64,000 nucleotides of DNA from the NCBI GenBank assembly GCA_977017575.1, contig CDRNVI010000084.1:44019-108018 (forward strand). The letters are read 5' to 3'. The notes beneath the pieces are model-generated. The model ran no database searches, was not told the origin of the DNA, and was given only the letters and a program-made list of their open reading frames with translations. This document shows positions 7,384 to 41,885 of the stretch, piece after piece. The stretch comes from Paramoeba atlantica (Eukaryota > Protista > Discosea). Each line of letters starts with the position of its first letter. Within the stretch, counting starts at the first letter, position 1. Made by a program: the position numbers and the translations under genes.

Positions 7384-9941
7384 CGGGACCTCGGGGCCGG
7401 ACGACCCCTGACACGGTACGGCTGCTCGGGAGGCCGCACCGTAGAGACGATAACCACGGAATTCCCTGGTCCCGGCCAGGTCCCGATCAGAGAAAATTAT
7501 TTAGGCCACAATATAAGGTTAAAAAACATAAATTATCTCGAGCTTCCAGAAGATGTGCTAGAGAGCTGTGTGCGACGAGCGGAAGAAATTTTCCGCGAAA
7601 AGTTTTCTCCAGGAACGCAGGAAATTATGAAGAGACTATGGCGAAGATTCGCAAGTTTCGGGGAACAGGTTCACTCCCAAGGATACGCGCTCGACGAAGA
7701 GAGGATGCTTTCCGCCTTTGCGCTCCATCTTTACGATCAAGAGGGCGTGAAAGGCCAAACAGTGGTGCAATATTTGTGCCACCTCGCGAACGAGTACTCC
7801 CTCTCGGGTGTGAAACTAGATGTAGCTCGGATGGATGCCTTAAAAATGGCCATGATGCGAAGGGCTTCTCCTGCTATAAAAGCGAACCCTATGTCTCGAG
7901 AGCAGGTAGTTCACTTTTTGAAGCAACCGCAACTGGCAGATATAGAAAGAACATTCATAATGGTGTACTGGCTCAGCGGCCAGAGGCCAGGCGAACTGCT
8001 AACTCTCAATGTGGACGAAGTGTCGATCACTTCCGAGGACAACGACGAGACACACTTAGCTATCTGGATGTTAAACCCGGCCAAGAATGTCACAAATCAG
8101 GAAAGGAGTACGCCCCGCTGCATACGAATGGTGATTCCTCAGGCCTGGAAGAAAACAATTCAAACCACTCTATGGACTTATCGGAGGATAGGTCGCGAAA
8201 AATGGTTCGGGGAAGTGGACTTGAGAAAACTAAATCTGGCATTGAAAAAACTGCCGGCCGTTTTGAACCATCCTCGACTGAAGGAGAGGTTCAGTTTGTA
8301 TTCGATTCGCAGAGGAGCGCTTCAACACCTTGCAGCGTTGGACGCGACAGCGCCGGATATTCAATGCTCAACTCGACATGTATCGGAAAACTCCCTTCGC
8401 GCTTACCTGGGATCCTACATGGATCCGAAAGCGGTGAAAGGTTTAGAGGTATCGAGACTACTAGGTGTACAGGCACCTCTGTATACGGAATTTCCCATGA
8501 GAGAACGAGGAACGTCTACCCGGAAAGATACCTTGACTCCACCCCCTACGAGGACACCAATCGAAATAGATTTGCCCCTCTGGGGGAGCGAGAATCCGAC
8601 CCCGGTTGCCGTGAGCGAGCGATCGTCAAAGAGGACTCCTTGCGAAACGATGGCTTGCGAAACCCCGCGCTGGGAACCCTCGGGCAGGTTCGAAACACCC
8701 TGTTTTCAGAATGTGGCGAGAATACTCCCTTTGTCAACCCCACCACTGCCCGGAGTTTCCTCGACCCTCGCCGTTTTAGCGCCGGAGAGCGACATACCAG
8801 AATCGTGGTCGATCGAAAAGTCCGGCGCTCCCCCTCTCGCCGCCCTGGAATTTCCTCCCGTGCCTCGGTTTTCCGAGCGACCTCGCCTACAGGATCCAAT
8901 CCCCGAGTTTCCATTACAGGACAGCCTGTTTCGTACCCCCGCTCTGGTGCCAGAACCTCCCACCATCATTTCCCTGTCGCCCCCTCGGCAACAAAGTTTC
9001 CAAAGTCAACCAACGTTCTTCCCCTCCTGGCTTGCCCAGCCGGAGAGAATGCAACAGCCGGAGATTGTCAACCCGGAGAACGTGTTTTCCTCCCCAAGCC
9101 ACGCTCAAGGCATGACACCTTCGACTTTGACGCAGTTTCCCCTAGTCTCTCAGACTATCATACCGGTTCAAGTGGTATCTTCCCTTTCTCCGCAAGCCCC
9201 GACGCCACACCAGAAAAAACCCAGTCCAGTGTTGGGTTCTCCCCCCCCTCGGCTTCTGGCCCCACATCAGGAAGCACCAAGTCTGATGGTGTGCTCCCCC
9301 ACTTCCCAGGCTCTGACGCCACATCAGGAAACACCAAGTCCGGTAGTGTCTTTTCGCACACCCGGGGCTCTGACGCCCCGTCAGGAAAGCTCAAGTCAAG
9401 CTCCTCCGTACATCACACCAGGTTTTGCCACTCCCGCAACTCCGTTCAACTTTTTGGCGTATCGGGACGCCGATCATTGGACCCCGCCTCCTCAGCCAAC
9501 GCCGCCCCCCAATCCGCCGCCCGTAATTCATTACGAACCGCCGATGCAGAAAAAACGGTATCGAGTTCCTCAATACTTGTACAACCCGACAGGGACGGAC
9601 TACGCGTCTCCCGTTCAATCGCGGGCGAGATTCAAGAAGGCAAAAAGAGACGAACGGGAAAGGGAACTGGCACAAGCGGAGCACGACGACATGGTAGCAC
9701 AAAGGGAGATGGAGTCCGATACGGAACGGGACATCTAGGTCCAAACAAAAACGAGGCGATCACAGATTATGGAGCCTGCGTCGCCGCACCAATAGGTGTC
9801 GGCACCTCGCCGTGGAAAGTGTTATTTGATTTCGCGTCATATGGGTATGCGCGATCGGGAAAACTTTTCAGCGAGAGAAATAGCAAGAAACCGCCGCAAT
9901 GGCCGTTAGACCCGATGCCTGCGACGCGGTTAGATGTATAG
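7380..9941 (+). CDS. N-terminal part of the family-A RT-frame ORF, overlapping YR in another frame; cut by element D
   Basis: ATG overlaps the gag stop (ATGA, 7380-7383). It ends WPLDPMPATRLDV, similar to LPLHVKPDVPILDV just before RT in 58435-59790. Confidence 0.6.
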   Translation: MTGPRGRTTPDTVRLLGRPHRRDDNHGIPWSRPGPDQRKLFRPQYKVKKHKLSRASRRCARELCATSGRNFPRKVFSRNAGNYEETMAKIRKFRGTGSLPRIRARRREDAFRLCAPSLRSRGRERPNSGAIFVPPRERVLPLGCETRCSSDGCLKNGHDAKGFSCYKSEPYVSRAGSSLFEATATGRYRKNIHNGVLAQRPEARRTANSQCGRSVDHFRGQRRDTLSYLDVKPGQECHKSGKEYAPLHTNGDSSGLEENNSNHSMDLSEDRSRKMVRGSGLEKTKSGIEKTAGRFEPSSTEGEVQFVFDSQRSASTPCSVGRDSAGYSMLNSTCIGKLPSRLPGILHGSESGERFRGIETTRCTGTSVYGISHERTRNVYPERYLDSTPYEDTNRNRFAPLGERESDPGCRERAIVKEDSLRNDGLRNPALGTLGQVRNTLFSECGENTPFVNPTTARSFLDPRRFSAGERHTRIVVDRKVRRSPSRRPGISSRASVFRATSPTGSNPRVSITGQPVSYPRSGARTSHHHFPVAPSATKFPKSTNVLPLLACPAGENATAGDCQPGERVFLPKPRSRHDTFDFDAVSPSLSDYHTGSSGIFPFSASPDATPEKTQSSVGFSPPSASGPTSGSTKSDGVLPHFPGSDATSGNTKSGSVFSHTRGSDAPSGKLKSSSSVHHTRFCHSRNSVQLFGVSGRRSLDPASSANAAPQSAARNSLRTADAEKTVSSSSILVQPDRDGLRVSRSIAGEIQEGKKRRTGKGTGTSGARRHGSTKGDGVRYGTGHLGPNKNEAITDYGACVAAPIGVGTSPWKVLFDFASYGYARSGKLFSERNSKKPPQWPLDPMPATRLDV
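7555..9738 (+). CDS. Tyrosine recombinase with long Pro/Ser-rich C-terminal tail
   Basis: WLSGQRPGEL (R), PAKN (K), YSIRRGA (H position is Y), TRHVSENSLRAY (H..Y). Start codon uncertain. Confidence 0.85.
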   Translation: MLESCVRRAEEIFREKFSPGTQEIMKRLWRRFASFGEQVHSQGYALDEERMLSAFALHLYDQEGVKGQTVVQYLCHLANEYSLSGVKLDVARMDALKMAMMRRASPAIKANPMSREQVVHFLKQPQLADIERTFIMVYWLSGQRPGELLTLNVDEVSITSEDNDETHLAIWMLNPAKNVTNQERSTPRCIRMVIPQAWKKTIQTTLWTYRRIGREKWFGEVDLRKLNLALKKLPAVLNHPRLKERFSLYSIRRGALQHLAALDATAPDIQCSTRHVSENSLRAYLGSYMDPKAVKGLEVSRLLGVQAPLYTEFPMRERGTSTRKDTLTPPPTRTPIEIDLPLWGSENPTPVAVSERSSKRTPCETMACETPRWEPSGRFETPCFQNVARILPLSTPPLPGVSSTLAVLAPESDIPESWSIEKSGAPPLAALEFPPVPRFSERPRLQDPIPEFPLQDSLFRTPALVPEPPTIISLSPPRQQSFQSQPTFFPSWLAQPERMQQPEIVNPENVFSSPSHAQGMTPSTLTQFPLVSQTIIPVQVVSSLSPQAPTPHQKKPSPVLGSPPPRLLAPHQEAPSLMVCSPTSQALTPHQETPSPVVSFRTPGALTPRQESSSQAPPYITPGFATPATPFNFLAYRDADHWTPPPQPTPPPNPPPVIHYEPPMQKKRYRVPQYLYNPTGTDYASPVQSRARFKKAKRDERERELAQAEHDDMVAQREMESDTERDI

Positions 9942-10046
9942 CTTGACTTGCCCCGCTCGGGTGCCAGTCACGCACACTTCCTGTAGGATGGAAGGTCGGA
10001 CGTTAACCTCATTCCCTTGCAGGAGAATTAAGTGTATCTGTATTTT
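9936..10046. repeat. 3' terminus of element D; exact 111-bp inverted match to 16583-16693
   Basis: Base-by-base reverse-complement identity. Confidence 0.95.
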
Positions 10047-10510
10047 GTTTGTTTGTTTGTTTGTTTGCTTGTTTGGTACAGGAGCGCCTGCAATCCCCAC
10101 GTGCAGACGCCACAAGTACCACTCCGGCTCCCGTCTGATTCCGGGTACGGGGACGCAAGGCTCTCCTAGGGCGCTTCACCAGTGACACTGTACACTATGT
10201 AGTGAGCCTACTATGTGCCAATCCCACTGGGAGGGTTCCTGATCAAGCACGAACGCCGCTTTTTCATGAATTAATAAATGATGCTGTAAAAAGAAAGTAA
10301 AGTTGAAGTGAAAAATGGAAAGAAGAAAAGAAAGATATTCAAGGTGACATGCTAGTAGAAAACCATTTTACCTTGACGCATGACCTTTTTACGAAAGGTG
10401 GAGTGACATACCAGAACAAAAGTTAGTGTATAATAGTACATGTAGTGTGTACATGCAACGTAGTCTGCGTCGCTGACGTAATTTTCCTTTCTACTAGATA
10501 TCTAATGTGT

Positions 10511-12253
10511 CTAAGGCAAAATTCTGCTTACAAAAGTCGCTCCTTGCTGCTCGTACACGTGTAAAGCATTGATCAATCGCTCCCAGGATTTTGCGCACCT
10601 AAAACAGTACTCCTCGTCTGTGTACTTTTTGTTTGGACGAGTTCCAACATCGGCTAAATTTTCTTCACTTGGAATGTCGCACATGATTATTCTTCCATGA
10701 AAGTCCTTGTACACTTTGACTATTTTATCCAGAGATTCTACCTGAGAAAAACCTTTAGAAAAGGAGCGAGCGGCTGCCGTGTTGTCGCTACCTATAATAA
10801 TGTTGGAAAATCCCCGCTTTATCGCCATTCGGATAGCTTCTGATATAGCAGTTGCCTCGGCCAGAACTATCTCCATTTGACAAGTTTGCTCGACTATTTG
10901 ACTATTTACTGGCTTAGAATCGGACATTGGCCACACGGCCAACCTGGTAGTTGTGGCGTCCACGACAGCATAAAATATTCTCTTGCCCTTAATGTAACGG
11001 CGATACATTTTCCAATTGTGTGGATGAGAGTTTTCCCGGATAACTCGAAAAGAGGTCTCAATAGTTACATCTCTCGCACAACCCGATAACAGCCTTGCAT
11101 CCCAGTCATCCACCAGACCAAGTTCGCTTTGATACTTGGTGAGCCTACCCAATTCGCGAGGAGGTATACCAAGAATGGCAGAAACGTGTCGCACGTACCC
11201 GCAGAACTGAAATAAAATACGCGGAGTTATTTCTACTAAGTTCTTCAAAGCGTTGGACCAGGTTTCAGCAACAGTCGGGTCAGCCATCCACGATACATGC
11301 CCCTCTTTTTGGATAATCCTTATACCACAATACGTGAACTGACACGTGTTCTTCTCCATGGTCATGTATTTTGCGACTACATTGAATTTACGAAAGTTGT
11401 ATTTTAGATTGACGTGCCATCTTTTCAGTGTACTTTCTGTGCTGACGATCAAAAATGAATCGTACATAAGGGCAATGAAACCTCCTTCATGGAGCAGTAC
11501 GATCCCTGGAGCTCTGGTATCGGTAAGCACGCTTTCTAAACCATCAAGTTCTGTTGGATTATGGTCACGATAGGTCAATATTCCCCACATGATGCTCTGA
11601 GCGATACCGCATGCGAGCTTATACCCCATAGGTAGCACCGTAGGTCGGAGATATGAGGAGCCTTGCCTGATGCAACATGCGCTCCCAAGTTCAGGGGTAA
11701 TAGGGATTTGGTAATACCAATTTTTGATGTCCCCATGAAGAAAGCGGAAACGCTTTTTCGTGCAATCCCCCAAATCCACTAATGCTTGTATAAGTTCCGC
11801 AGTGCTCGGAATTTTAAATGAAATTTCTGTAAGAATAGTGCGTTCGTTAGTCCATCTCAAATCGAAAATTGCACGGGCGAACTTTTCGTCCTTCAAAACT
11901 GCCATATACTTGCCGACTCCTGTGACATTTTGTGGTGTCGTAGGCACTAACACTTTGCTATCACATAAAGTGTCCAAATGGTGCCTATAGGATTGTGAAT
12001 TCGGTGTATCGGACATACACTCTTTCTGAATGTCTGGAGGGAGAGGGGAGGTGCCAAGTAACTTCAGTGCCTGGCATACAAAGGGAATACGAGCGAAGTC
12101 GGAACTCATTATTTTTATTCCCCCGACGTTTTGAAGGGGACAAAGAGGAGCCCGATCATTCGCAAATGAACCTCGACCACGCCAAGCCGTGATTTCTTCA
12201 TTGTGATAAACACCCCCGCTTAAATCAGCGTCGATGAAGGAGTGCGCAATCAT
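10511..12253 (-). CDS. DIRS-type reverse transcriptase / RNase H
   Basis: AVLKDEKFARAIFDLRWTN, HGDIKNWYYQ, LPMG, MYDS (atypical motif C), FTYCG; RNase H VDAT, AEATA, SDN, ENLAD. Confidence 0.88.
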   Translation of the reverse strand: MIAHSFIDADLSGGVYHNEEITAWRGRGSFANDRAPLCPLQNVGGIKIMSSDFARIPFVCQALKLLGTSPLPPDIQKECMSDTPNSQSYRHHLDTLCDSKVLVPTTPQNVTGVGKYMAVLKDEKFARAIFDLRWTNERTILTEISFKIPSTAELIQALVDLGDCTKKRFRFLHGDIKNWYYQIPITPELGSACCIRQGSSYLRPTVLPMGYKLACGIAQSIMWGILTYRDHNPTELDGLESVLTDTRAPGIVLLHEGGFIALMYDSFLIVSTESTLKRWHVNLKYNFRKFNVVAKYMTMEKNTCQFTYCGIRIIQKEGHVSWMADPTVAETWSNALKNLVEITPRILFQFCGYVRHVSAILGIPPRELGRLTKYQSELGLVDDWDARLLSGCARDVTIETSFRVIRENSHPHNWKMYRRYIKGKRIFYAVVDATTTRLAVWPMSDSKPVNSQIVEQTCQMEIVLAEATAISEAIRMAIKRGFSNIIIGSDNTAAARSFSKGFSQVESLDKIVKVYKDFHGRIIMCDIPSEENLADVGTRPNKKYTDEEYCFRCAKSWERLINALHVYEQQGATFVSRILP

Positions 12254-12612
12254 TCCTTTATATAGATTTTGAAATATGAAATGTGTTCATACGTATGGAA
12301 GATGTGGCACAATTCGTCGTAGGCGTTCGTAGAACGCTCCTCATCTTAAACTAATGGAGTAGTATGTACACGATGTGTAGAACAGTGGAGATGTGCAGTA
12401 ACTGCATCGAATATTTTAATTTTATTCATTGTTGCTCCACAGATCTCTTGGATTACAAAATAAAGCAATTAACAAGCGGTTAGTGGTACGTGGTCGCATA
12501 GCCCATCGATCCGGTTACGTAGAAAATTTTCGTGTACATTGTAATACTAAAAGTAGCAAGGAACTTCTTGGAGTTTGCCGGTTTATCAAAAGCTTAAAAT
12601 CTAATTGTAGGA

Positions 12613-13485
12613 CTATTCCATAGAATAGTGAGTAGCTGTGAACTCTGACATCCAACGCCCTCGCCGGAGGCGTGTCGTAAGGTCTGTTCCTTCGCGAGTT
12701 AAATGACCAGCGCATCCATGTCGGAGACAGTGGAAGGACCAAGTTTGATGTGAGTTCCACTGCAAAAGGTTCGCAACATGTGATATGATTCTGTTTGCTT
12801 TCACTTTGTCCCAATTAGGAAATAAGGCCAGATGGGATGATGATGATTTTAGGTACATCAACAGATGACATACTTCTGGGGCTACGACAGTGTCGACAAT
12901 ATAATGTTGACGTCCTTTTCCTCCACGAATCTTAATCAATGCGTCAGAGGAATTCGCTTCAATATCTGTCTTTTCGAGATTCACTAATTCGCTGTGACGC
13001 AGAAGTCCGAAATACGCGACGGCGAAGCCTTGACCATATGCGAGTTCGCCTTGGTCTTTACAGTAATTAGTCAGAGACCGCATTTGCGCGAGTGTGATCG
13101 AGCCTCGAGGTTTGGGCTGCAGACAGATATTTTGGACGCCTTTGAAGCGTCTGCGAAAGCGCGAGGTCTGCGACCAACACTGATCGGTGTTTTGATCTTC
13201 TAATTGCCGCCAAACTACAGCGGCACGGTAGGATTCCAAAGTGGATCCCCGATAGAAGCGTGACAGGCTGACGCACAACGCCAAGAAGTCCTCTTCCGTT
13301 ATATTGTGTACCCCGTGTACACCAAGTAATTGTTCTGTGCGGGAAAAATAGTACACACGCTTTTGTGCTGTCGCAGGGGCCACTGCCCACTGAGAAATTT
13401 GTCGATGTACGCTGTTTTGACGCGCTTGACGATAACCTTGACTGATGGTTTCATCAGAAACTCGAACGCGGCGTTGAGAAGGCAT
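12613..13485 (-). CDS. Tyrosine recombinase
   Basis: YFGLLRHSE (R), GGKG (K), FHCLRHG (HxxR), GRW...HY (W, Y); N-terminal core-binding-like region. Confidence 0.92.
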   Translation of the reverse strand: MPSQRRVRVSDETISQGYRQARQNSVHRQISQWAVAPATAQKRVYYFSRTEQLLGVHGVHNITEEDFLALCVSLSRFYRGSTLESYRAAVVWRQLEDQNTDQCWSQTSRFRRRFKGVQNICLQPKPRGSITLAQMRSLTNYCKDQGELAYGQGFAVAYFGLLRHSELVNLEKTDIEANSSDALIKIRGGKGRQHYIVDTVVAPEVCHLLMYLKSSSSHLALFPNWDKVKANRIISHVANLLQWNSHQTWSFHCLRHGCAGHLTREGTDLTTRLRRGRWMSEFTATHYSME

Positions 13486-14054
13486 GCAGGAAATGTAGCT
13501 CTATCGAAAACGAAATTTATAGAGAAATCCTATTGAGAGAAACAACATGTTTTACACCCTTTCGTCTAGTGTTACAACCATGACCCGTATGGGGGAAGAA
13601 AATCCCAAGACTTCTGAATGTGGCTTTAGTCCACTAGGATAAAGTACCAATGTAATATTCTCATAACTTACTACAGTTGTTACGAGTTGCTCAAGTATAG
13701 CATAAAAAAGAATAGCCCAACTTTTGTTTTGTAAGTGCAAAAGCAGCCGTGTCATTTCACACCGTTAAAAGGAAGCATCCAGTCAGAATAGAACAGTCCC
13801 TGTGAGTAGTATACTATATTTCTACGTTTTTGAAAAACGTTAAGCAGTTCGATCGGTTTGAAGCATAAGTAATGCAGTAAATTTGTAGTAAAAAATTGCG
13901 CAGATATAAATATGCAACAGCATTTCAGAAGTAAAGCACATTGAGCATTTTCTTTGCTAAGCACAAGTTTCTCTATGTGTAAAAAGAGATGTTAAACCAA
14001 TATCGATTTCGAAATCACACTCGAGCCTCTAAAGCTACTATTTCGAAAGTAGGT

Positions 14055-15125
14055 CTATTCACGACCTACGCGCTTGTACCCCGGCTTTTCATTAGGGGTT
14101 TTCATTTTGAGACGAACCTGTTCGTCGGTCAATCGACAATTCTTCAGTTCATGACCGCGCATCCCGCAGTGCTTACATGAACCACGTGGTGCATTGGGAT
14201 ACAGCCACGTTTTCCAGTTACGCCCCCGTATGGCAGGCGAGCGTGGCTTATGTCCCGAACCTGACGCACTCTTGCGAGGTTGGGACCGATTTACGAGCTG
14301 GACAGCGCGGGAGTGGGTCGCAATAAATGAAACAATATTCTTATTTCCGCGGTCCTTGGAATCGTCAAGCATAAGCTGCTCGAGAGTTACCGTGTCCACC
14401 TGCGCCCCGTCGTGGGAGAGACGATGGGAGAGGAGTTCGGCCCCTACCTTGCACAAGAATGTCCAAAAGGAGATGCGGACCGCCTCGTTTTGAACATCAG
14501 GTATCGGCGTCCCCGGCGCGAGCTCGGTTAGAACCCGGGCGCAGTTGACCATGTCAGGCCGACTACCAACGCTGTCACGGACCTTCTTCTTGGTCGCTGC
14601 TGTCAGCCACGGTTCGGAGCTAAAGCCCGACTGCGTCAAACAGTCATGAAGCTCTCTTCCGCACCGCGGGTCATCGCGCGTACCGATGATGTCACGAAAC
14701 GCCCCACGTACATCCTTGCTGTTCTTATCTTCAGTAGAACAGCTAGCAGTGGTAGCATCTGCGGAGGTACCGGAGTTCAATGTTCCTTGAAGAGCACACA
14801 GCTCATCTCGAAGGGCAATAAGCACGTTCTGGGGAACGTCGCGGGATCCAAAGTCTCCGCTTTGCAGGGCCACAAGCGCACGGCGAATCGCTTGAACCCC
14901 CCGAGCGCTGTCGCCACTCCCACCATGCGCTGAAGTGCGCTCAAAAATTTCATCAATGCCATGCTTCTCCTTAACATGGCAGACTGCGCCGGAAATCGCA
15001 TCAAGGATCTCGGACCGCAAGGTGACTCCCATCCGTTTCATTGAACAGAGGCTCAGAAACGCTTGATGAGCGTCTCCGATTCCTGAAATTGAGTCAGGAA
15101 CCAAGTTCGGAAGAGCGTCGGGCAT
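14055..15125 (-). CDS. gag-like protein with CCHC zinc knuckle
   Basis: CKHCGMRGHELKNC (C-x2-C-x4-H-x4-C); first ORF of element D. Confidence 0.85.
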   Translation of the reverse strand: MPDALPNLVPDSISGIGDAHQAFLSLCSMKRMGVTLRSEILDAISGAVCHVKEKHGIDEIFERTSAHGGSGDSARGVQAIRRALVALQSGDFGSRDVPQNVLIALRDELCALQGTLNSGTSADATTASCSTEDKNSKDVRGAFRDIIGTRDDPRCGRELHDCLTQSGFSSEPWLTAATKKKVRDSVGSRPDMVNCARVLTELAPGTPIPDVQNEAVRISFWTFLCKVGAELLSHRLSHDGAQVDTVTLEQLMLDDSKDRGNKNIVSFIATHSRAVQLVNRSQPRKSASGSGHKPRSPAIRGRNWKTWLYPNAPRGSCKHCGMRGHELKNCRLTDEQVRLKMKTPNEKPGYKRVGRE

Positions 15126-15544
15126 AGGTAATTAAAGGTAAAATAGTATAATAACTTTCAGTCTCTTTGAAAACAAAAACATGTTATTTTGTTCGCTGCC
15201 TGCTTATCTTTTATTCACCTGATGATCACAATGAATTATGTGATTGTCCTTTTCCGTTGACAAACGATAGACAAAATGATGCAGCGACTATGAAATCGTC
15301 GCAAACGACGTAGTGCTGCAGAGCACATATCAAATCAAAACACATGACAAAATCTCCAGCCATGTAGGCTGGATTGCTCATTTTATAACACGCGGCGGGA
15401 AGCCTGAATACACTGTCGCGTATGACTGTGTACCTCGTGTGTTTCCAGATATCACGTATGACTATGCAACAAGTGTTTGCACCTTTATGAGCGGAAAGGC
15501 TGCATGTCTTGTACCTGATCAGCCCAAAATCTACACATGTGCAG

Positions 15545-16415
15545 AAGTTTCCACGAATGTCGGAACCTTATGAGCCTCTTGACCATGTTCGTGGTAACAC
15601 GTGGGATTTTTCCACAAATGTTGGAATCCAATAAAGGTTACAGATGCAGCGCCATATACAAAAAATACACGATTCACAGAAATGTTGTAATCCATTGAGC
15701 CACAAATTTTGGAGTCTGATGAGCCTTTAAAGCTATAGAAGGCTGGCTTTAGTGAAAAAATCCACAAATGTTGGATCGCACGAGCCGAAGGGCTACATAT
15801 TTCGTGACGTATGTTCCACGTGTCGGAACGTATGAACCCAAAGGCTACACATGTAGCGTCATGTACAAAGCTTTTCGCAAATGTAGCCTATGGAGTCTGA
15901 TGGCCTTAAAACCGTTCGTGGTAACACGCAAGAATTCGTCCACAAAATGTTGGAATTACCCATTGAGCCACACAATGGGCCCTCAAAGTGGTTTCATATA
16001 AAAAATAAAAATCCGCAAATGTTGGATGGCACGAGCCGAAGGGCTACATATCTTGTGCCGTATGTTCCACATGTGTTGGAACCATCACGTAGAACTTTCC
16101 ACAAATATTGGAACTTTTTCAACCACTTGGTCATGTTCGTGGTAACACGTAAGAATGTTTCCACAAATGTTGGAATCTATAAAAAGGTCACAGATGCGGC
16201 GCCACATAAGAAAAATTCCACAAATTTTGGAATCTATTGAGGTACAATAGCTGGAGTCTAATGAGCTGTTAGAGCTGTATAAGTGGTTTCAGTGAGATTC
16301 ACATAAAAAATCCACAAATGTTGGATCGCACGAGCCGAATGGCATACGGTATCTTGTGATCTACACATACATCACACACGTTGTATGTTCCACATGTGTT
16401 GGAATCTTATGAACC
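15545..16415. repeat. Degenerate composite repeat array upstream of the element D gag
   Basis: Recurrent CCACAAATGTTGGAA, CACGAGCCGAAGGGCTACATAT, GTTCGTGGTAACACG and TATGTTCCAC modules. Confidence 0.8.
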
Positions 16416-16582
16416 CAAAGAATATACTAATTGTTACGTATGCATGCACGCGTTTACGTACGCGACATATACGTATATATAAAAAAACTTAGAATAATGA
16501 GCGGTCTGGCAGTAAGCATTTCCCTGAGTCTGTTTATTGAAAAAATGAATCAAGAAATGATTGGAAAGCTAAGTAATGACAA

Positions 16583-16737
16583 AAAATACAGATACACTTA
16601 ATTCTCCTGCAAGGGAATGAGGTTAACGTCCGACCTTCCATCCTACAGGAAGTGTGCGTGACTGGCACCCGAGCGGGGCAAGTCAAGCTATACTTCCTAT
16701 ATGTGTAAGGTGTCCTATAATCCTGCTGGTCCAAAGC
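16583..16737. repeat. Internal complementary region (ICR-like) of element D
   Basis: 16583-16693 is the reverse complement of 9936-10046; 16691-16737 approximates the reverse complement of 16921-16972; the shared TAC/GTA is at 16691-16693. Confidence 0.9.
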
Positions 16738-16920
16738 TAACAGGTCGGAAGAACCTCCCCCCCCCTTTTTTTTTGTGTGTGTGTAAGTATTTACACAAAA
16801 TACAAGTAGTACTTAATTTCCTATATCCTAATACAGTAGTATATATATTACAGTTGTACTTAATTTCCTACCATCACCTTTCCACATGCACTTGGTTGCG
16901 ACCAAGGCCAGTGGCCCCGG

Positions 16921-16972
16921 GCTTTGGACCGGTAAAGCAGGGTTATAGGATACCTTACACATATAGGAAGTA
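16921..16972. repeat. 5' terminus of element D; imperfect inverted match to 16691-16737
   Basis: GCTTTGGACC....AGCAGG.TTATAGGA.ACCTTACACATATAGGAAGTA, with a small indel and a few mismatches. Confidence 0.85.
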
Positions 16973-18222: not shown

Positions 18223-18260
18223 ATCTTTAACGATAAAGATACAGTTTCTGTACCTTGTTG
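18223..18260 (+). ncRNA. Spliced-leader (mini-exon) sequence copy heading an RTE-like element; not a complete SL RNA gene
   Basis: ATCTTTAACGATAAAGATACAGTTTCTGTACCTTGTTG contains the kinetoplastid SL core ACAGTTTCTGTAC and ends TTG; followed by T18, with no GT donor. Confidence 0.85.
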
Positions 18261-18469
18261 TTTTTTTTTTTTTTTTTTACACCTCTAACAATTTTCATGA
18301 CACATCACAGCACGGTAGACGCGTTTTCGTGAATGGGAAAAAGAGGAAAACGATCAACCGAGGGTGCAGACCGCCAGCTTAAACGTAGGAATGAAAATGT
18401 AACGCAAAAACAAAAAAAGAATGAAAATAACCCCTCGTTTTTGGCAAAAGCAAGCCCGAAGAACAAAGT

Positions 18470-19738
18470 GTGCTCGTGAACGACAAACTAAAAATTCAGG
18501 CGACTGAAAGGAATAGTTTCTGTTTAGGAACCTACAATGTACGCTCCTGGGGTGGCCGGTCGAATGATACATCAGATTGCTGGGTAACTAATGCGTCGAA
18601 CACTGCTAGGCTAGCAACGCAAGCGGACATCGACATACTTGGTGTTCAGGAATGTCGCATTCCCGGTGTCAACCGAATTCAAATCGTAACAGAGAATGGT
18701 CCTTGGACATTACTACATAGTGGTCACGGTACGAAGAAAAAGTTTATAAACGGCGTAGGACTACTTCTAAACAGACGTGCTACCAAAGCTATGATTGGGT
18801 ATCATGGGATAAACGAACGCATTATCTGTGCAAACTTTAGAATCCGCAATTCTAAAAACATGTTTATCGTTTGCACATACGCGCCGACAGAGGTTGCAGA
18901 ACCTATAAACAAAGATGAGTTTTATGAGTCACTGAATGAAGCAATGAAGTTTAAGCGTGCTGATGAAATACCGCACGTAATAGGTGATTTCAACGCCAGA
19001 ATTTGCTACCGCAATGCCTTATCTCCACAGGTAGGTCGCAATGCGATCGGAACAAGGACAACAAACAACGGATCAAGACTCGTCGATTTCTGTCGCACGC
19101 ACGGCTTAATCCTATTAAATACACATGCAATACCAAAGAACGATACAGAGCATAATAAGCCATACTCAGTCACATGGTATTCGAATACAAAAACAGACTG
19201 CGGCCAAATAGATTACATAGCTGTACCCTCTTTCGTAGTCGCGCGTAATACGGAAGTAGCACAAAACTTGGAATACGAAAGCGATCACCGCCTATTACGT
19301 ACCAGCTTGGCAGTCGAACCAGCACGTATCCAGACTGAGTGTAATAAGACGTACGTTATTAATCTTCAGGATGAGGAAATCCGACTAAAATATCAGCAAA
19401 AGCTTCATGAGAATCTTGAAAACAAAGTCCATGATTCCAACACAACGTTAAATCTTACCGCGATATGGGAGGAAATTACTGTTGCAATTCGCAACAGCGC
19501 GCAAGTATTAAACGCTGCACGAAAAAAGACGAAAATTTGGATGACTCCTCAAGTACATGAAATAATAACACGCCGAAAAAAAGCTTTTCAGGAAACACTA
19601 CACCAAGGATCCACAGATCAGGAAAGTATCGTTGCCAAGAATTACTACACGCAAATAAGATCTGAAGCTCAGAAAGTGTGTCGATCAGCAAAACGAAAAC
19701 ACTATAACACAGAAATAAATAGAAAACGCTGCCCGTAG
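18470..19738 (+). CDS. APE endonuclease part of the RTE-like polyprotein
   Basis: GTYNVRS, LGVQECR, GVGLLL, YAPT, GDFNARI, IDYI, SDH. Confidence 0.9.
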   Translation: MLVNDKLKIQATERNSFCLGTYNVRSWGGRSNDTSDCWVTNASNTARLATQADIDILGVQECRIPGVNRIQIVTENGPWTLLHSGHGTKKKFINGVGLLLNRRATKAMIGYHGINERIICANFRIRNSKNMFIVCTYAPTEVAEPINKDEFYESLNEAMKFKRADEIPHVIGDFNARICYRNALSPQVGRNAIGTRTTNNGSRLVDFCRTHGLILLNTHAIPKNDTEHNKPYSVTWYSNTKTDCGQIDYIAVPSFVVARNTEVAQNLEYESDHRLLRTSLAVEPARIQTECNKTYVINLQDEEIRLKYQQKLHENLENKVHDSNTTLNLTAIWEEITVAIRNSAQVLNAARKKTKIWMTPQVHEIITRRKKAFQETLHQGSTDQESIVAKNYYTQIRSEAQKVCRSAKRKHYNTEINRKRCP

Positions 19739-19739
19739 A

Positions 19740-21674
19740 CAAAAAGTAAAAGAACTTCACAGACAGGCAGATCTCATTGTAGCACGCGACACAATTGCAA
19801 GCAAGTACTGTCAGATCATCAATGATCAAAATGGGGACTCGACAATTGATGAGCAAGACATCGTTAATACGTTCGCTGCCCATTTCACACGTTTGCAGCA
19901 CTGCACGAAGTCTAACTTCAGCATAGAAAAAGTAAGAAAAGACCTAGAGTGTAATGAACTGCATTCAACAAGAAAACAAAACTTCATAAGAAACGAAGAC
20001 GAATCCTACAACGAACTACCGCCAAGCGTAGAAGAAACCCAAGAAGCAATAAAAAACTTAAAGAACGGGCGTGCTGCAGGACCAGACGAAGTGCAAGCTG
20101 AATTATTTAAGTATGGCGGCGCTGAACTGACGTTCCTCACAGCCAAAATAATGCAGGCCTGTTGGAACCAAAGATCGATACCACACAGCTGGCAACACTC
20201 TACGATAATATGTCTATATAAAGGAAAAGGTGCTGGGTCAATGCGAGACACAAACTCGTACAGAGGTATCTCCCTACTGACTCTAGGCAACAAAATTCTC
20301 ACAAACATAATTCACACCCGGCTTACAAACAGAATCGAAAGAAGTTTACTCGAAACACAAAATGCTTATAGAAGGAACAGGGGAACAACCGATGCCATAT
20401 TTTCACTGAGACGTCTCATCGAACTCCATAGAAATCAAACAAAACCGCTCTACATTGTATACGTGGATATCAAAAAAGCTTTCGACAGTTTGCCAAGGGA
20501 TGCAATCTGGGAAGTACTCCGAAATATCAACATAAAGGGCACACTACTCGAGATGATCCAGGTGCTGTATAAAAATACAACCGCTGATGTGAAGCTCGGA
20601 ACAACTACTAGCGTCACCTTCGAAACGACAACAGGCGTCAAACAGGGTTGTGCCATGAGCGGGACTCTGTTCATCGCGGTCTTCGATGCGATATTGAGAA
20701 CTTGCACTCGGGATCATAATTCAGGGATTACAGTCAAATGGAGGATTCCTAAGGGCAGAAAGTGCAGAGGCGACACAGTTGGTGGCACTGAAGGAGTAGG
20801 GCACCTGGCATACGCGGATGACCTCTGTATCTGCTCAAACGACATCAATAAGTTGAGAAACACATCTGCAGCCTTAGCAAGCACGCTAGAGTACTGGGGC
20901 CTAAGCATCAATATAAATAAAACAAAGATCCAAGTGCTTCAGCAAGAGAAGGTAGCACGCCCTGTCAGTATCATGATTAAAGGACAAGAACTAGAGCAAG
21001 TCAAAGTATTCATGTACTTAGGGTCCATCATTGAGGAAAATGGAGAGATCAACGCTACCATATCGCATAACATAAGGTCTGCCTGGTCGAAAATAAAGTA
21101 CTTGGACCGCCTATGGAACAACAGTACTTTATCACGCAACACGAAAACTAGATTCTTCAAAGCTTTTGTGATTCCACGGTTAACTTACGCATGTTCCACC
21201 TGGGCTGTAGACGAAAGACAGCTCAAATGGATCACTAAGGAGTATATGAAAATGGCAATGAAAGCTAGTGGAATATTCGCCACACAGCTCATCAAAGTCC
21301 AGAACGAATTACATGGCCCAGACGAGGAGGAGCACATATATCTATTAAAACGCAGAAGCCACGAAGAAATACTTTCTACTAGCAGACTACCACATATACG
21401 TGAAGTAATCGAAAAGCAAATACTGAGCTACGCAGGCCATGTAGCTAGGATGGGCCCCGAACGCCTACCAAACAAGTTACTTTTCGGAACCATCGATTCA
21501 GAGAAAAAATTAAAGAGAGATCCACCACATATCCGTACAATATATCGGTGTCTACATAAAACTGGTATATCGCCCGAAAACTGGAAACAAGCATCTCAGA
21601 ACCGTGCGCAGTGGAAAAAAGACATTGACGTAACAGCACAGCCCAATAGTTTAAGAAGACGCCGTGCAATATAA
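19740..21674 (+). CDS. RT part of the RTE-like polyprotein (frameshifted from the APE part)
   Basis: GRAAGPD, YRGISLL, YVDIKKAFDS, GVKQG, YADD, YLGS; RTE-type C-terminus YAGHVARM..RLPNKLLFG. Confidence 0.92.
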   Translation, partial: QKVKELHRQADLIVARDTIASKYCQIINDQNGDSTIDEQDIVNTFAAHFTRLQHCTKSNFSIEKVRKDLECNELHSTRKQNFIRNEDESYNELPPSVEETQEAIKNLKNGRAAGPDEVQAELFKYGGAELTFLTAKIMQACWNQRSIPHSWQHSTIICLYKGKGAGSMRDTNSYRGISLLTLGNKILTNIIHTRLTNRIERSLLETQNAYRRNRGTTDAIFSLRRLIELHRNQTKPLYIVYVDIKKAFDSLPRDAIWEVLRNINIKGTLLEMIQVLYKNTTADVKLGTTTSVTFETTTGVKQGCAMSGTLFIAVFDAILRTCTRDHNSGITVKWRIPKGRKCRGDTVGGTEGVGHLAYADDLCICSNDINKLRNTSAALASTLEYWGLSININKTKIQVLQQEKVARPVSIMIKGQELEQVKVFMYLGSIIEENGEINATISHNIRSAWSKIKYLDRLWNNSTLSRNTKTRFFKAFVIPRLTYACSTWAVDERQLKWITKEYMKMAMKASGIFATQLIKVQNELHGPDEEEHIYLLKRRSHEEILSTSRLPHIREVIEKQILSYAGHVARMGPERLPNKLLFGTIDSEKKLKRDPPHIRTIYRCLHKTGISPENWKQASQNRAQWKKDIDVTAQPNSLRRRRAI

Positions 21675-33971: not shown

Positions 33972-35156
33972 ATGAATAACAGTCAAGCGGGGAGTGCACG
34001 CGAAGCTCTTTTGAATAGTTTTGTGCGTTTCGTAGACAGCGAAATGCGTCGCACTCAAGAACAAGAGGAAGAAGAAGAGTTACCTCGCACTCCAGAGGAA
34101 TTACGAACTCCTGGTGCCTGGGCTGACAGACTTATTTTTAGCCCCTTGGTTGGGGCCGAAGCTGCTGCACGTACTTTGCTTCCGTCAGTTCGTGTATGTC
34201 CAGGTTGTGCTGAGTTTTCTTGTGTGCGCGCGTGGCGAAATTTTAATATGATCCCTCAAGGCAAGCGTGCAGAATCCTGGATGAAAAATCACGGTCTGTT
34301 GAAAGCACCTTCTTGTACTGTGCATGGTCCAAGTATGATGCGGGATATACCCGGACGGCCTAACATCCAAATGTGCTGTTTTCATGAATTCCAGCGCAAT
34401 CCGTGTCGGATGAAGCGAGGAAAACTTGAACCTTATGTGTCTGGTCGAATGGACATTGACGCGGGAAAGTTGCTTCGAATTTGGGCAGATATTGCCGATA
34501 ATTTGACAGCGGGCCAAATTGCGAGAAACCGTTCCATTAGGCACAAGGTGGTGACGAAAATTCTACACGACTTAGGCAATGCAGCACTACACCAAGAAGA
34601 AAATGCGGTGTACGCATTTTCTAGTCTGCAGGTGGATGAAACCTTCGTGGGAAAACGGAAATACCACCGAGGAAGACGCCCCCGAAACGTGGGACATTGG
34701 TTTGTGAGCATAACCGAGGTTAAGGGAAGACGAATGGGTCGGACTCATTGGAAGCTCGTTAAGCGACGAGACCACGAAACTTTGAAAAATTTCATACTTC
34801 CGCACTTGGAGAGTGCGCGGTCTTTGGTAGTGACTGATGCTTGGCGTGGATACTTGGGGATGGAGGAGTTCTGTCGGCACTTCGCCGTGAACCATTCGAG
34901 AGAGTTCGTTGAACTCCATGGCTATCATACGAACCATGCGGAGTGTGTGCACCGAATTATAAAAGACTGGACCAAGCGCCAGCACTATAATTTCGGTGCA
35001 TCAGCTCAAGACCTCAAGCGCAATATTGCTCTCCAATGCGTTAAATTCGGGAGCGTACACAATGATCCAGAGCGAGCCAAGCTTCCAATGAGGTGGGCAT
35101 GTCAGAAGAAGAAGTGCGTTTTGGGCGCACTAAAGGGATACACTTTTTTTTTTTAA
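33972..35156 (+). CDS. Merlin / ISXO2 (IS1595-like) DDE transposase, intact
   Basis: QVDETFVGKRKYHRGRR, RDHETL, VTDAWRGY, VNHSREFV, HTNHAE; N-terminal Cys/His cluster. TIRs not identified. Confidence 0.92.
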   Translation: MNNSQAGSAREALLNSFVRFVDSEMRRTQEQEEEEELPRTPEELRTPGAWADRLIFSPLVGAEAAARTLLPSVRVCPGCAEFSCVRAWRNFNMIPQGKRAESWMKNHGLLKAPSCTVHGPSMMRDIPGRPNIQMCCFHEFQRNPCRMKRGKLEPYVSGRMDIDAGKLLRIWADIADNLTAGQIARNRSIRHKVVTKILHDLGNAALHQEENAVYAFSSLQVDETFVGKRKYHRGRRPRNVGHWFVSITEVKGRRMGRTHWKLVKRRDHETLKNFILPHLESARSLVVTDAWRGYLGMEEFCRHFAVNHSREFVELHGYHTNHAECVHRIIKDWTKRQHYNFGASAQDLKRNIALQCVKFGSVHNDPERAKLPMRWACQKKKCVLGALKGYTFFF

Positions 35157-40700: not shown

Positions 40701-41885
40701 ATGAATAACAGTCAAGCGGGGAGTGCACGCGAAGCTCTTTTGAATAGTTTTGTGCGTTTCGTAGACAGCGAAATGCGTCGCACTCAAGAACAAGAGGAAG
40801 AAGAAGAGTTACCTCGCACTCCAGAGGAATTACGAACTCCTGGTGCCTGGGCTGACAGACTTATTTTTAGCCCCTTGGTTGGGGCCGAAGCTGCTGCACG
40901 TACTTTGCTTCCGTCAGTTCGTGTATGTCCAGGTTGTGCTGAGTTTTCTTGTGTGCGCGCGTGGCGAAATTTTAATATGATCCCTCAAGGCAAGCGTGCA
41001 GAATCCTGGATGAAAAATCACGGTCTGTTGAAAGCACCTTCTTGTACTGTGCATGGTCCAAGTATGATGCGGGATATACCCGGACGGCCTAACATCCAAA
41101 TGTGCTGTTTTCATGAATTCCAGCGCAATCCGTGTCGGATGAAGCGAGGAAAACTTGAACCTTATGTGTCTGGTCGAATGGACATTGACGCGGGAAAGTT
41201 GCTTCGAATTTGGGCAGATATTGCCGATAATTTGACAGCGGGCCAAATTGCGAGAAACCGTTCCATTAGGCACAAGGTGGTGACGAAAATTCTACACGAC
41301 TTAGGCAATGCAGCACTACACCAAGAAGAAAATGCGGTGTACGCATTTTCTAGTCTGCAGGTGGATGAAACCTTCGTGGGAAAACGGAAATACCACCGAG
41401 GAAGACGCCCCCGAAACGTGGGACATTGGTTTGTGAGCATAACCGAGGTTAAGGGAAGACGAATGGGTCGGACTCATTGGAAGCTCGTTAAGCGACGAGA
41501 CCACGAAACTTTGAAAAATTTCATACTTCCGCACTTGGAGAGTGCGCGGTCTTTGGTAGTGACTGATGCTTGGCGTGGATACTTGGGGATGGAGGAGTTC
41601 TGTCGGCACTTCGCCGTGAACCATTCGAGAGAGTTCGTTGAACTCCATGGCTATCATACGAACCATGCGGAGTGTGTGCACCGAATTATAAAAGACTGGA
41701 CCAAGCGCCAGCACTATAATTTCGGTGCATCAGCTCAAGACCTCAAGCGCAATATTGCTCTCCAATGCGTTAAATTCGGGAGCGTACACAATGATCCAGA
41801 GCGAGCCAAGCTTCCAATGAGGTGGGCATGTCAGAAGAAGAAGTGCGTTTTGGGCGCACTAAAGGGATACACTTTTTTTTTTTAA
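40701..41885 (+). CDS. Merlin / ISXO2 transposase (duplicate copy)
   Basis: Identical translation to 33972-35156. Confidence 0.92.
   Translation: MNNSQAGSAREALLNSFVRFVDSEMRRTQEQEEEEELPRTPEELRTPGAWADRLIFSPLVGAEAAARTLLPSVRVCPGCAEFSCVRAWRNFNMIPQGKRAESWMKNHGLLKAPSCTVHGPSMMRDIPGRPNIQMCCFHEFQRNPCRMKRGKLEPYVSGRMDIDAGKLLRIWADIADNLTAGQIARNRSIRHKVVTKILHDLGNAALHQEENAVYAFSSLQVDETFVGKRKYHRGRRPRNVGHWFVSITEVKGRRMGRTHWKLVKRRDHETLKNFILPHLESARSLVVTDAWRGYLGMEEFCRHFAVNHSREFVELHGYHTNHAECVHRIIKDWTKRQHYNFGASAQDLKRNIALQCVKFGSVHNDPERAKLPMRWACQKKKCVLGALKGYTFFF

Follow-up and report, generated by a model that had tools for sequence, protein, structure and literature searches.

The DNA analyzed here, referred to as the window, is a 64,000-nucleotide (nt) stretch of contig CDRNVI010000084.1 (positions 44,019 to 108,018, forward strand) from the Paramoeba atlantica assembly GCA_977017575.1. 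It carries a tyrosine recombinase (YR) retrotransposon on its minus strand, at window positions 16972–9936 (7,037 bp, including the trinucleotide TAC at both ends). All features of the element given below lie on the minus strand, and nt numbers of the element count from its 5' end. On the sense strand the element starts with TACTTCCTATATG... and ends with ...GTCAAGCTATAC. Three separate open reading frames (ORFs) of 356, 290, and 580 amino acids, all of which have an ATG close to where the frame opens, encode in this order a gag-like protein, a YR, and a reverse transcriptase (RT) with RNase H. An earlier note on this DNA, made from its letters alone, had described an intact YR retrotransposon with the gene order gag-YR-RT/RNase H, and this description holds. 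The three-ORF plan is equally open in a second copy, located on contig C12, and is also intact in a copy of another family on contig C6.

The gag-like ORF (14055–15125) contains a CCHC zinc knuckle (CKHCGMRGHELKNC), is without a Pfam match, and has the same ORF as its counterpart in the C12 copy. The YR ORF (12613–13485) matches PF00589 (E 4.6e-11), and the R, K, H-x-x-R, W, and Y motifs are present in its translation. The RT/RNase H ORF (10511–12253) has 17 homologues (E down to 1e-255), which are proteins without names in ENA, Logan, and JGI assemblies, and its match to RVT_3 scores 20.8 bits, slightly under the 21.6-bit cut-off. In RT alignment A1, the motif A aspartate is invariant, and LPMG and YDS motifs are present. 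Motif C has the YDS form in place of the usual YxDD in all 11 aligned homologues (Y264 and D265 invariant; the next residue S, T, or N), and YDS looks like a trait of the clade rather than a defect of the window copy. The nearest neighbors of the RT by protein features are Euglenozoa clusters, and more distant neighbors include the hepadnavirus P protein. A methyltransferase domain was not found, as RVT_3 is the sole Pfam match of the 580-amino acid ORF and there is no further long ORF. The predicted coding content, consisting of a YR, an RT/RNase H, and a gag-like protein with no integrase or endonuclease, is that of the DIRS order. The host genome appears to be that of a kinetoplastid, with which a kinetoplastid-type spliced-leader tail in the window (...CAGTTTCTGTAC...) agrees.

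The flanks of the element are part of a repeat that has at least six uninterrupted copies in the genome, and the two flank matches overlap by 6 nt. Six empty paralogous sites read ...CAATAATTT-TAC-ATCTAACC..., with a single TAC, whereas the filled site has TAC on each side, giving a net insertion of 7,034 bp. The element was thus inserted as a single precise unit, with one trinucleotide common to its junction and its target. A trinucleotide shared in this way is the pattern described for DIRS1-like elements (PMC3266345, PMC7192593). The ORF interrupted by the element had been a candidate for a reverse transcriptase; this was rejected, as the uninterrupted 957-amino acid ORF matches no Pfam family and shows no similarity by BLASTP to the RT of the element. 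Loose contig ends at position 16970 among contigs from public runs (assembled Logan contigs, none on record as RNA) were accounted for by the empty paralogous sites and the flank of the C12 copy.

The C12 copy (L001 2242–9479) is 97–99% identical to the window copy. The three ORFs differ between the two at only 10 of 3,732 nt (0.27%), and the insertion is therefore, judging from sequence divergence, recent, which fits the six empty sites and the earlier note's suggestion of recent activity. Two more related fragments, on contigs C56 and C30, duplicate each other, and divergent relatives on C23 and C14 are fragmentary.

Terminal Architecture

The termini of the element are each complementary to one half of a block located near its 5' end. 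A repeat search of the window found two inverted pairs. The first, I1, joins 9933–10046 with 16583–16696 (114 nt, 99%) and includes a perfect part of 111 of 111 nt over 9936–10046. The second, I2, joins 16691–16727 with 16936–16972 (37 nt, 95%), extending to ~52 nt if a 5-nt gap is allowed. Pair I1 defines the 3' terminus, b' (9936–10046), which ends in TAC, and its perfect complement, ICR-b (16583–16693). Pair I2 defines the a' arm at the 5' terminus (16936–16972) and its reverse complement, ICR-a (16691–16727). ICR-a and ICR-b overlap by 3 nt, which are GTA on the sense strand (16691–16693), and the block as a whole (16583–16727) occupies nt 246–390 of 7,037, within a region 236–390 nt from the 5' end and upstream of all ORFs.

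On the sense strand, the block reads ...CATATAGGAA-GTA-TAGCTTGAC..., which represents, in reverse complement, a junction of the 3' end with the 5' end in which the two have a single GTA in common. The block therefore qualifies as an internal complementary region (ICR) proper, as the term is used for DIRS1. The earlier note had reported the perfect 111-bp match and the join at GTA, as found here, and had taken the block as equal to the circle junction; on the sense strand it is instead the reverse complement of that junction.

The termini themselves have no repeat in common. When the 5' 235 nt were compared with the 3' 300 nt, direct and inverted similarity alike stayed at the level of shuffled sequence (scores of 21 and 27, as compared to shuffle maxima of 27 and 26). 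Neither inverted terminal repeats (ITRs) nor split direct repeats were found in the element by repeat search and end-to-end comparison, nor were direct repeats that link the termini to an internal site (A1 ... B1 A2 B2 type). The picture of unlike ends served by a 5'-located ICR, in the absence of ITRs and split direct repeats, thus agrees with what had been noted before.

ICR-b and b' on their own can be read as near-terminal inverted repeats, and the locus might accordingly be a composite or an assembly artefact, in which a small hairpin element bearing a ribozyme of the twister class (described below) sits beside a separate element with 111-bp inverted repeats. We consider this very improbable. 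The empty sites show that all 7,034 bp were inserted as one unit, and the trinucleotide at which the a and b halves meet is exactly the one present at each end of the element. Furthermore, the same arrangement occurs on other contigs and in other families, and its parts are covered by independent contigs from public runs.

Twister Ribozyme and ICR Complementarity

Nucleotides 24–106 of the element (16867–16949) form a putative twister ribozyme of the P1 type with a P5 hairpin and a CCA/UGG variant of pseudoknot T1. The earlier note had the ICR alone splint both ends for circularization and missed this ribozyme. The core blocks are all present, namely U-AA, GC, the P4 loop UCCNAAGCC, and GANGG. 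An Rfam scan of the window at gathering thresholds gave no match, while a permissive scan matched RF03160 (clan CL00120) at 23.3 bits (E 0.21). A covariance model built here scores the window twister at 71.4 bits. Genome-wide, there are 56 weak twister matches, the best of which scores 39 bits.

We parsed 28 distinct examples and aligned 30 distinct sequences with our own covariance model. The covariation counts use related sequences, such that independent events are fewer than the cells counted, and in these counts 94.7% of cells were paired, as compared to 77.1% in shuffles (0 of 500 shuffles reached the observed value). The covariation score was 0.517 versus 0.203 for shuffles, controls with slid partners were 39–56% paired, and changes on both sides were observed in 10 of 16 pairs. 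Helices P1, P2, and P4 and pseudoknots T1 and T2 are supported by covariation. The T1 pair is C-G in 15 sequences and A-U in 13, and is unpaired in none; the window subfamily has the A-U form (loop UCCAAAGCC with GAUGG). The window copy also has a private compensatory change in P1, with CCUA/UAGG in place of the CCUU/AAGG of its relatives. Despite the kinship of the sequences, these comparisons point clearly to a twister fold maintained under selection.

A metagenome scan with the exact twister core gave no match. With a looser core, three contigs were found, two of which have twisters of the same pseudoknot variant; no ICR lies within reach of a twister in these three contigs. The A-U variant of T1 occurs in the twisters of contigs L048 (2653–2716, minus strand) and L050 (107–168, minus strand), and the L050 twister adjoins TTAGGGTG repeats.

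From the twister alignment, cleavage is predicted after U28, between window positions 16945 and 16944. The sequence upstream of the predicted cut constitutes a 5' leader (nt 1–28, TACTTCC...; 16945–16972), in which 27 of 28 nt agree with the reverse complement of ICR-a, and the a' arm consists of this leader and 8–9 nt past the cut. For 15 distinct elements having about eight leader types, we aligned the 5' end without gaps to the reverse complement of ICR-a. Mismatches were few before the cut (17/447) and at positions +1 to +8 (4/120), and abundant at +9 to +20 (127/180). The complementarity ends 8–10 nt past the predicted cut in every leader type examined. Leaders are strongly unlike between families, each one matching its own ICR-a, and the match always ends right after AACCCTGC.

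Leader and ICR-a also change in concert. The C12 copy has GTTA in both, and the window copy has GGTA in the leader and GGTG in ICR-a, while a post-cut mismatch at nt 31 is identical in the two copies. This mismatch pattern is what would be expected if the leader were copied from the ICR at each transposition and the post-cut stretch came from the RNA itself. The predicted twister cut, together with the matching stop of the complementarity, makes the ICR look like a template that restores the cleaved leader and not only like a splint.

Alternatively, the ICR may be a passive splint only, with the template RNA beginning at a start site of its own at nt 1–3 and the twister either serving some other purpose, for instance the release of translatable coding RNA from a polycistronic precursor, or being inactive. 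In keeping with this, copies that lack b' (see below) have their first nucleotide at nt 2 or 3, which would be expected if an RNA starting there were copied by run-off, and twister cleavage in Perere-3 sufficed for translation of downstream reporter genes (PMC8501958). A purely passive ICR nevertheless seems unlikely to us, given that the complementarity stops 8–10 nt past the predicted cut even though the leaders differ, that the C12 copy shows joint change of leader and ICR-a with the post-cut mismatch left unhomogenized, and that the ribozyme fold is under selection.

The ICR complement in several families resumes, after a 5-nt gap, with a segment similar to GGTCCAAAGC, which would lengthen the pairing. 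Such GGTCCAAAGC-like copies of the twister P4 loop, without the 5-nt linker, are seen at 16700–16737 of the window (minus strand) and in the ICRs of L007, L032, L035, and L040. The ICR could pair with the 5' half of the ribozyme in RNA, perhaps holding it open.

Related Copies and a Proposed Replication Cycle

The same layout recurs in other families of the genome, the order being 5' terminus, twister, ICR-a and ICR-b, body, conserved 3' block, microsatellite tail, and b'. It was found in copies on C3 (5,872 bp; b of 121 nt and a of 38 nt; TAC at both ends), C53 (6,929 bp; b of 157 nt, perfect), C30 (a 2.4-kb noncoding derivative), C65 (1.6 kb), and C51. A comparison of ends among other copies, as the earlier note had proposed, thus finds the a/b arrangement repeated, but it also finds that b' is missing from the C12 sister and from about half of the related copies, which by the note's own terms counts in part against its proposal.

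Five copies of four leader types lack b'. These are on C12 (the sister of the window copy), C6, C56, C9, and an ENA contig (loci L001, on C12, and L008, L046, L031, and L035), and each terminates with a (CAA)n or (CAAA)n tail, 0–9 nt short of the position of b'. All start at nt 2 or 3 and have the full leader, and no target duplication is visible at any of the five. Coordinate searches suggest a ratio of complete to b'-less copies of about 1:1. The corresponding end point in the window copy is a (CAAA)n microsatellite tail (10047–10074), which is preceded by a conserved 3' block with predicted stem-loops (10075–10267). This block of 190 nt adjoins the tail and is conserved, with 82–88% identity, at no fewer than 14 loci of other families, between whose RT proteins identity is only ~50%. 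It has a stable predicted fold (−36.9 kcal/mol), and its sequence is too conserved for covariation. The block is a candidate recognition or priming site for the RT. From these observations, we take reverse transcription to start at the tail, such that the cDNA would not include b', which would be added only from the ICR. The b'-less copies are probably linear products that missed the circle step, and either cutting by the YR or a block at the junction is one possible cause of extension stopping there. A palindromic repeat with arms of 41–48 nt (TTAGGCTCTTCGTTAAACGCGGTGG...) occurs next to or inside YR elements (L031 8185–8295; also L009, L052, and L054). In Rfam it accounts for weak microRNA matches that are spurious, and it may represent a preferred target or an element akin to miniature inverted-repeat transposable elements.

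The best-supported reading of these data is the Cappello model for DIRS-1 with two changes, in which the complementary DNA (cDNA) ends and the circle are inferred and the cleavage is predicted. In the Cappello model, an incomplete minus-strand cDNA is completed on the ICR as template, the circle is closed, and the YR carries out a crossover at the trinucleotide (PMC7192593). The ICR is essential for DIRS-1 retrotransposition, acting after first-strand synthesis, and the trinucleotide junction defines integration (PMC7192593, PMC3266345). The first change is that the 5' deficit would be made by a ribozyme instead of an internal promoter; a 5'-end twister is known to work in non-long terminal repeat (non-LTR) retrotransposition (PMC8501958). 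The second is that one 5'-proximal ICR would serve termini that have no common repeat.

The cycle would proceed as follows. The twister would cut read-through transcripts of the kinetoplastid after nt 28, leaving a template RNA without the leader. Reverse transcription from at or near the microsatellite tail that follows the conserved 3' block would yield a cDNA without the 111-nt 3' terminus. The 3' end of this minus-strand cDNA would then pair with the minus-strand copy of the ICR through AACCCTGC and a bulged extension, and elongation on the ICR would rebuild the leader and, if continued, the 3' terminus. The ends would be closed into a circle with the junction ...GCTA-TAC-TTCC..., and the YR would recombine this junction with a target TAC, producing no target duplication.

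In summary, we interpret the element as an autonomous YR retrotransposon with VIPER-like gene order, which is headed by a twister and restores its ends in the DIRS1 way in a rearranged form, and we assign this interpretation a probability of roughly 0.65. A more demanding proposal, which we hold only tentatively and at slightly less than even odds, is that neither DNA terminus is present in the replicating RNA, that both are rebuilt in each generation from the one 5'-proximal ICR, and that the b'-less copies are trapped linear intermediates.

Several observations weigh against the modified Cappello cycle. The Rfam score of 23.3 bits is far under the gathering threshold of 67.2 bits, which we attribute to the absence of P3 and the length of P5, and the covariation was counted over related sequences, as stated above. 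Perfect pairing past the cut amounts to only 8 nt, and the window copy has one mismatch between leader and ICR-a (nt 22). The nucleotides common to both ends vary, being TAC in two copies, CTT in C53, and CGGTAC in C30; this variation fits a crossover within a short homologous core, by sequence comparison, better than it does a fixed cut. About half of the related copies lack b' yet start exactly at nt 2–3, which the classical circle model does not predict. Lastly, contigs from public runs show no element starts, ends, or distinguishable circle junction; the last of these is indistinguishable in such contigs because the ICR is the reverse complement of the junction.

The b'-less copies bear as well on a different route to integration. 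Folded single-stranded DNA serves as a recombination site in integron attC sites and in CTX phage, and the inverted pairs of the element (5' end with ICR-a and ICR-b with 3' end), instead of acting chiefly as templates, might similarly fold single-stranded cDNA into a nicked double-stranded junction that is used directly by the YR, with no closed circle. The b'-less copies, with a precise left end at nt 2–3 and a ragged right end, resemble the products of one-ended reactions, and DIRS-1 intermediates are mostly linear single-stranded cDNA whose circle junction was not amplifiable (PMC7192593). Complete copies, in contrast, are precise at both ends and their empty site has a single trinucleotide, which is the outcome predicted for crossover of a circle, and a folded site leaves the sharp stop of complementarity after the ribozyme cut unexplained. 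We therefore regard direct use of folded cDNA as improbable, slightly more so than a passive ICR, and retain the modified Cappello cycle.

Between the ICR and the gag-like ORF, the 5' untranslated region contains an array of short hairpin motifs (TTCCAACATTTGTGGAA type) within 250–300-bp repeats (15608–16403; direct repeat families D1, D3, D4, and D8). By a strict pattern, the 17-nt motif occurs 7 times in the window copy and 11 times in the C12 copy, whose array is ~300 bp longer; the motif was not found in three other families. The first 620 nt of the two copies, comprising leader, twister, spacer, and ICR (window 16353–16972 and L001 2242–2861), diverge by 3.7%, as compared to 0.27% in the ORFs. 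This divergence may reflect template exchange between families or error-prone copying in this region.

Outside the element, a spliced-leader-like tail (...ACAGTTTCTGTACCTTGTTG) followed by a T run (18223–18280, plus strand) lies directly upstream of an endonuclease/RT pair of the long interspersed nuclear element type (18470–21674). Two ORFs of equal length (394 amino acids; 33972–35156 and 40701–41885, plus strand) are 6.7 kb apart within a local duplication, and the first of these matches an ISXO2-like DDE transposase domain (PF12762).

Significance and Comparison with Known Systems

The understanding of how YR retrotransposons regenerate their ends rests on the Cappello model of 1985, of which only the need for the ICR has been shown experimentally. 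In the element described here, a ribozyme cut would set the loss of the RNA 5' end, the position of which can hence be predicted to the nucleotide. If the proposed cycle is correct, RNA 5' ends are predicted at nt 29 and tags placed in the ICR should be inherited by the leader; the element would be a natural system in which steps of the Cappello model can be read from genomic copies. It would likewise represent ribozyme-dependent YR retrotransposition, undescribed in the literature searched, and would add YR retrotransposons to the retroelement groups known to have a 5' self-cleaving ribozyme. Under polycistronic transcription, such a ribozyme suggests how a promoterless element could define the start of its RNA. 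The combination of DIRS1-type end logic with VIPER-like gene order implies that terminal architecture may be an unreliable guide to superfamilies within the order.

A full-text literature search yielded no ribozyme reported from a YR retrotransposon, and the layout of a 5' twister, a 5'-proximal ICR for both ends, and no terminal repeats was not found described in the literature searched. Ribozyme-headed elements are known among non-LTR retrotransposons, namely Perere-3, which has twister variants (PMC8501958), and L1Tc, which has Pr77 (as cited in PMC12278014). As in these elements, a 5' self-cleaving ribozyme would trim co-transcribed upstream RNA. In Perere-3, the 5' strand of helix P1 is contributed by target-site duplications that adjoin the site of cleavage (PMC8501958), whereas the DNA copies described here keep 26–35 nt upstream of the cut, which are mirrored in the ICR. 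The element also differs from Perere-3 and L1Tc in having a YR and no endonuclease, and in its mode of integration.

VIPER and TATE elements resemble the element in their kinetoplastid hosts, their order of gag-like, YR, and RT/RNase H ORFs (as the earlier note had pointed out), and the absence of target duplication. The nearest neighbors of the RT, the Euglenozoa clusters, are a further point of likeness, at the level of protein features. VIPER and TATE have been described, as late as 2025, with split direct repeats (A1 ... B1 A2 B2) at the 3' end (PMC6681497, PMC12278014). The element has no direct terminal repeats; its internal copy of the junction is inverted and 5'-proximal, and the layout is thus not one already published for VIPER/TATE, a possibility the earlier note had raised against its own proposal. 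A ribozyme has not been reported for VIPER/TATE. Ngaro and PAT-like elements are YR retrotransposons in which, as here, an internal copy of the terminal junction allows regeneration of full ends, but their copy is direct, in the form of split direct repeats, and the one here is complementary.

In terminal organization, the element has parallels with DIRS1-like elements, in which ITRs are present and the ICR sits at the 3' end, beside the right terminus (PMC3266345, PMC7192593). Both have two ICR halves that are each complementary to one terminus and overlap by a 3-nt circular junction, a trinucleotide that is found at each end and a single time in the target, target-site duplications being absent (seen for the window copy; the C3 copy is also flanked by TAC), a YR with RT/RNase H and gag, and ICR halves of the same order of size. 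The earlier note's proposal of a distinct architecture is upheld insofar as the element differs from published DIRS1-like and VIPER/TATE elements; the 3-nt junction shared with the target, on the other hand, is an established DIRS1-like feature. The ICR of the element is near the 5' end and not beside the right terminus, and in the absence of ITRs its termini consist entirely of what in published terms is 'extension.' Its gag, YR, and RT/RNase H are encoded by three separate ORFs, with no methyltransferase domain found. The right ICR half is 111–157 nt in length, as compared to published values of 57–88 nt, and the 5' deficit of the RNA, which in DIRS1-like elements arises from an internal start site, is here predicted to be made by a ribozyme.

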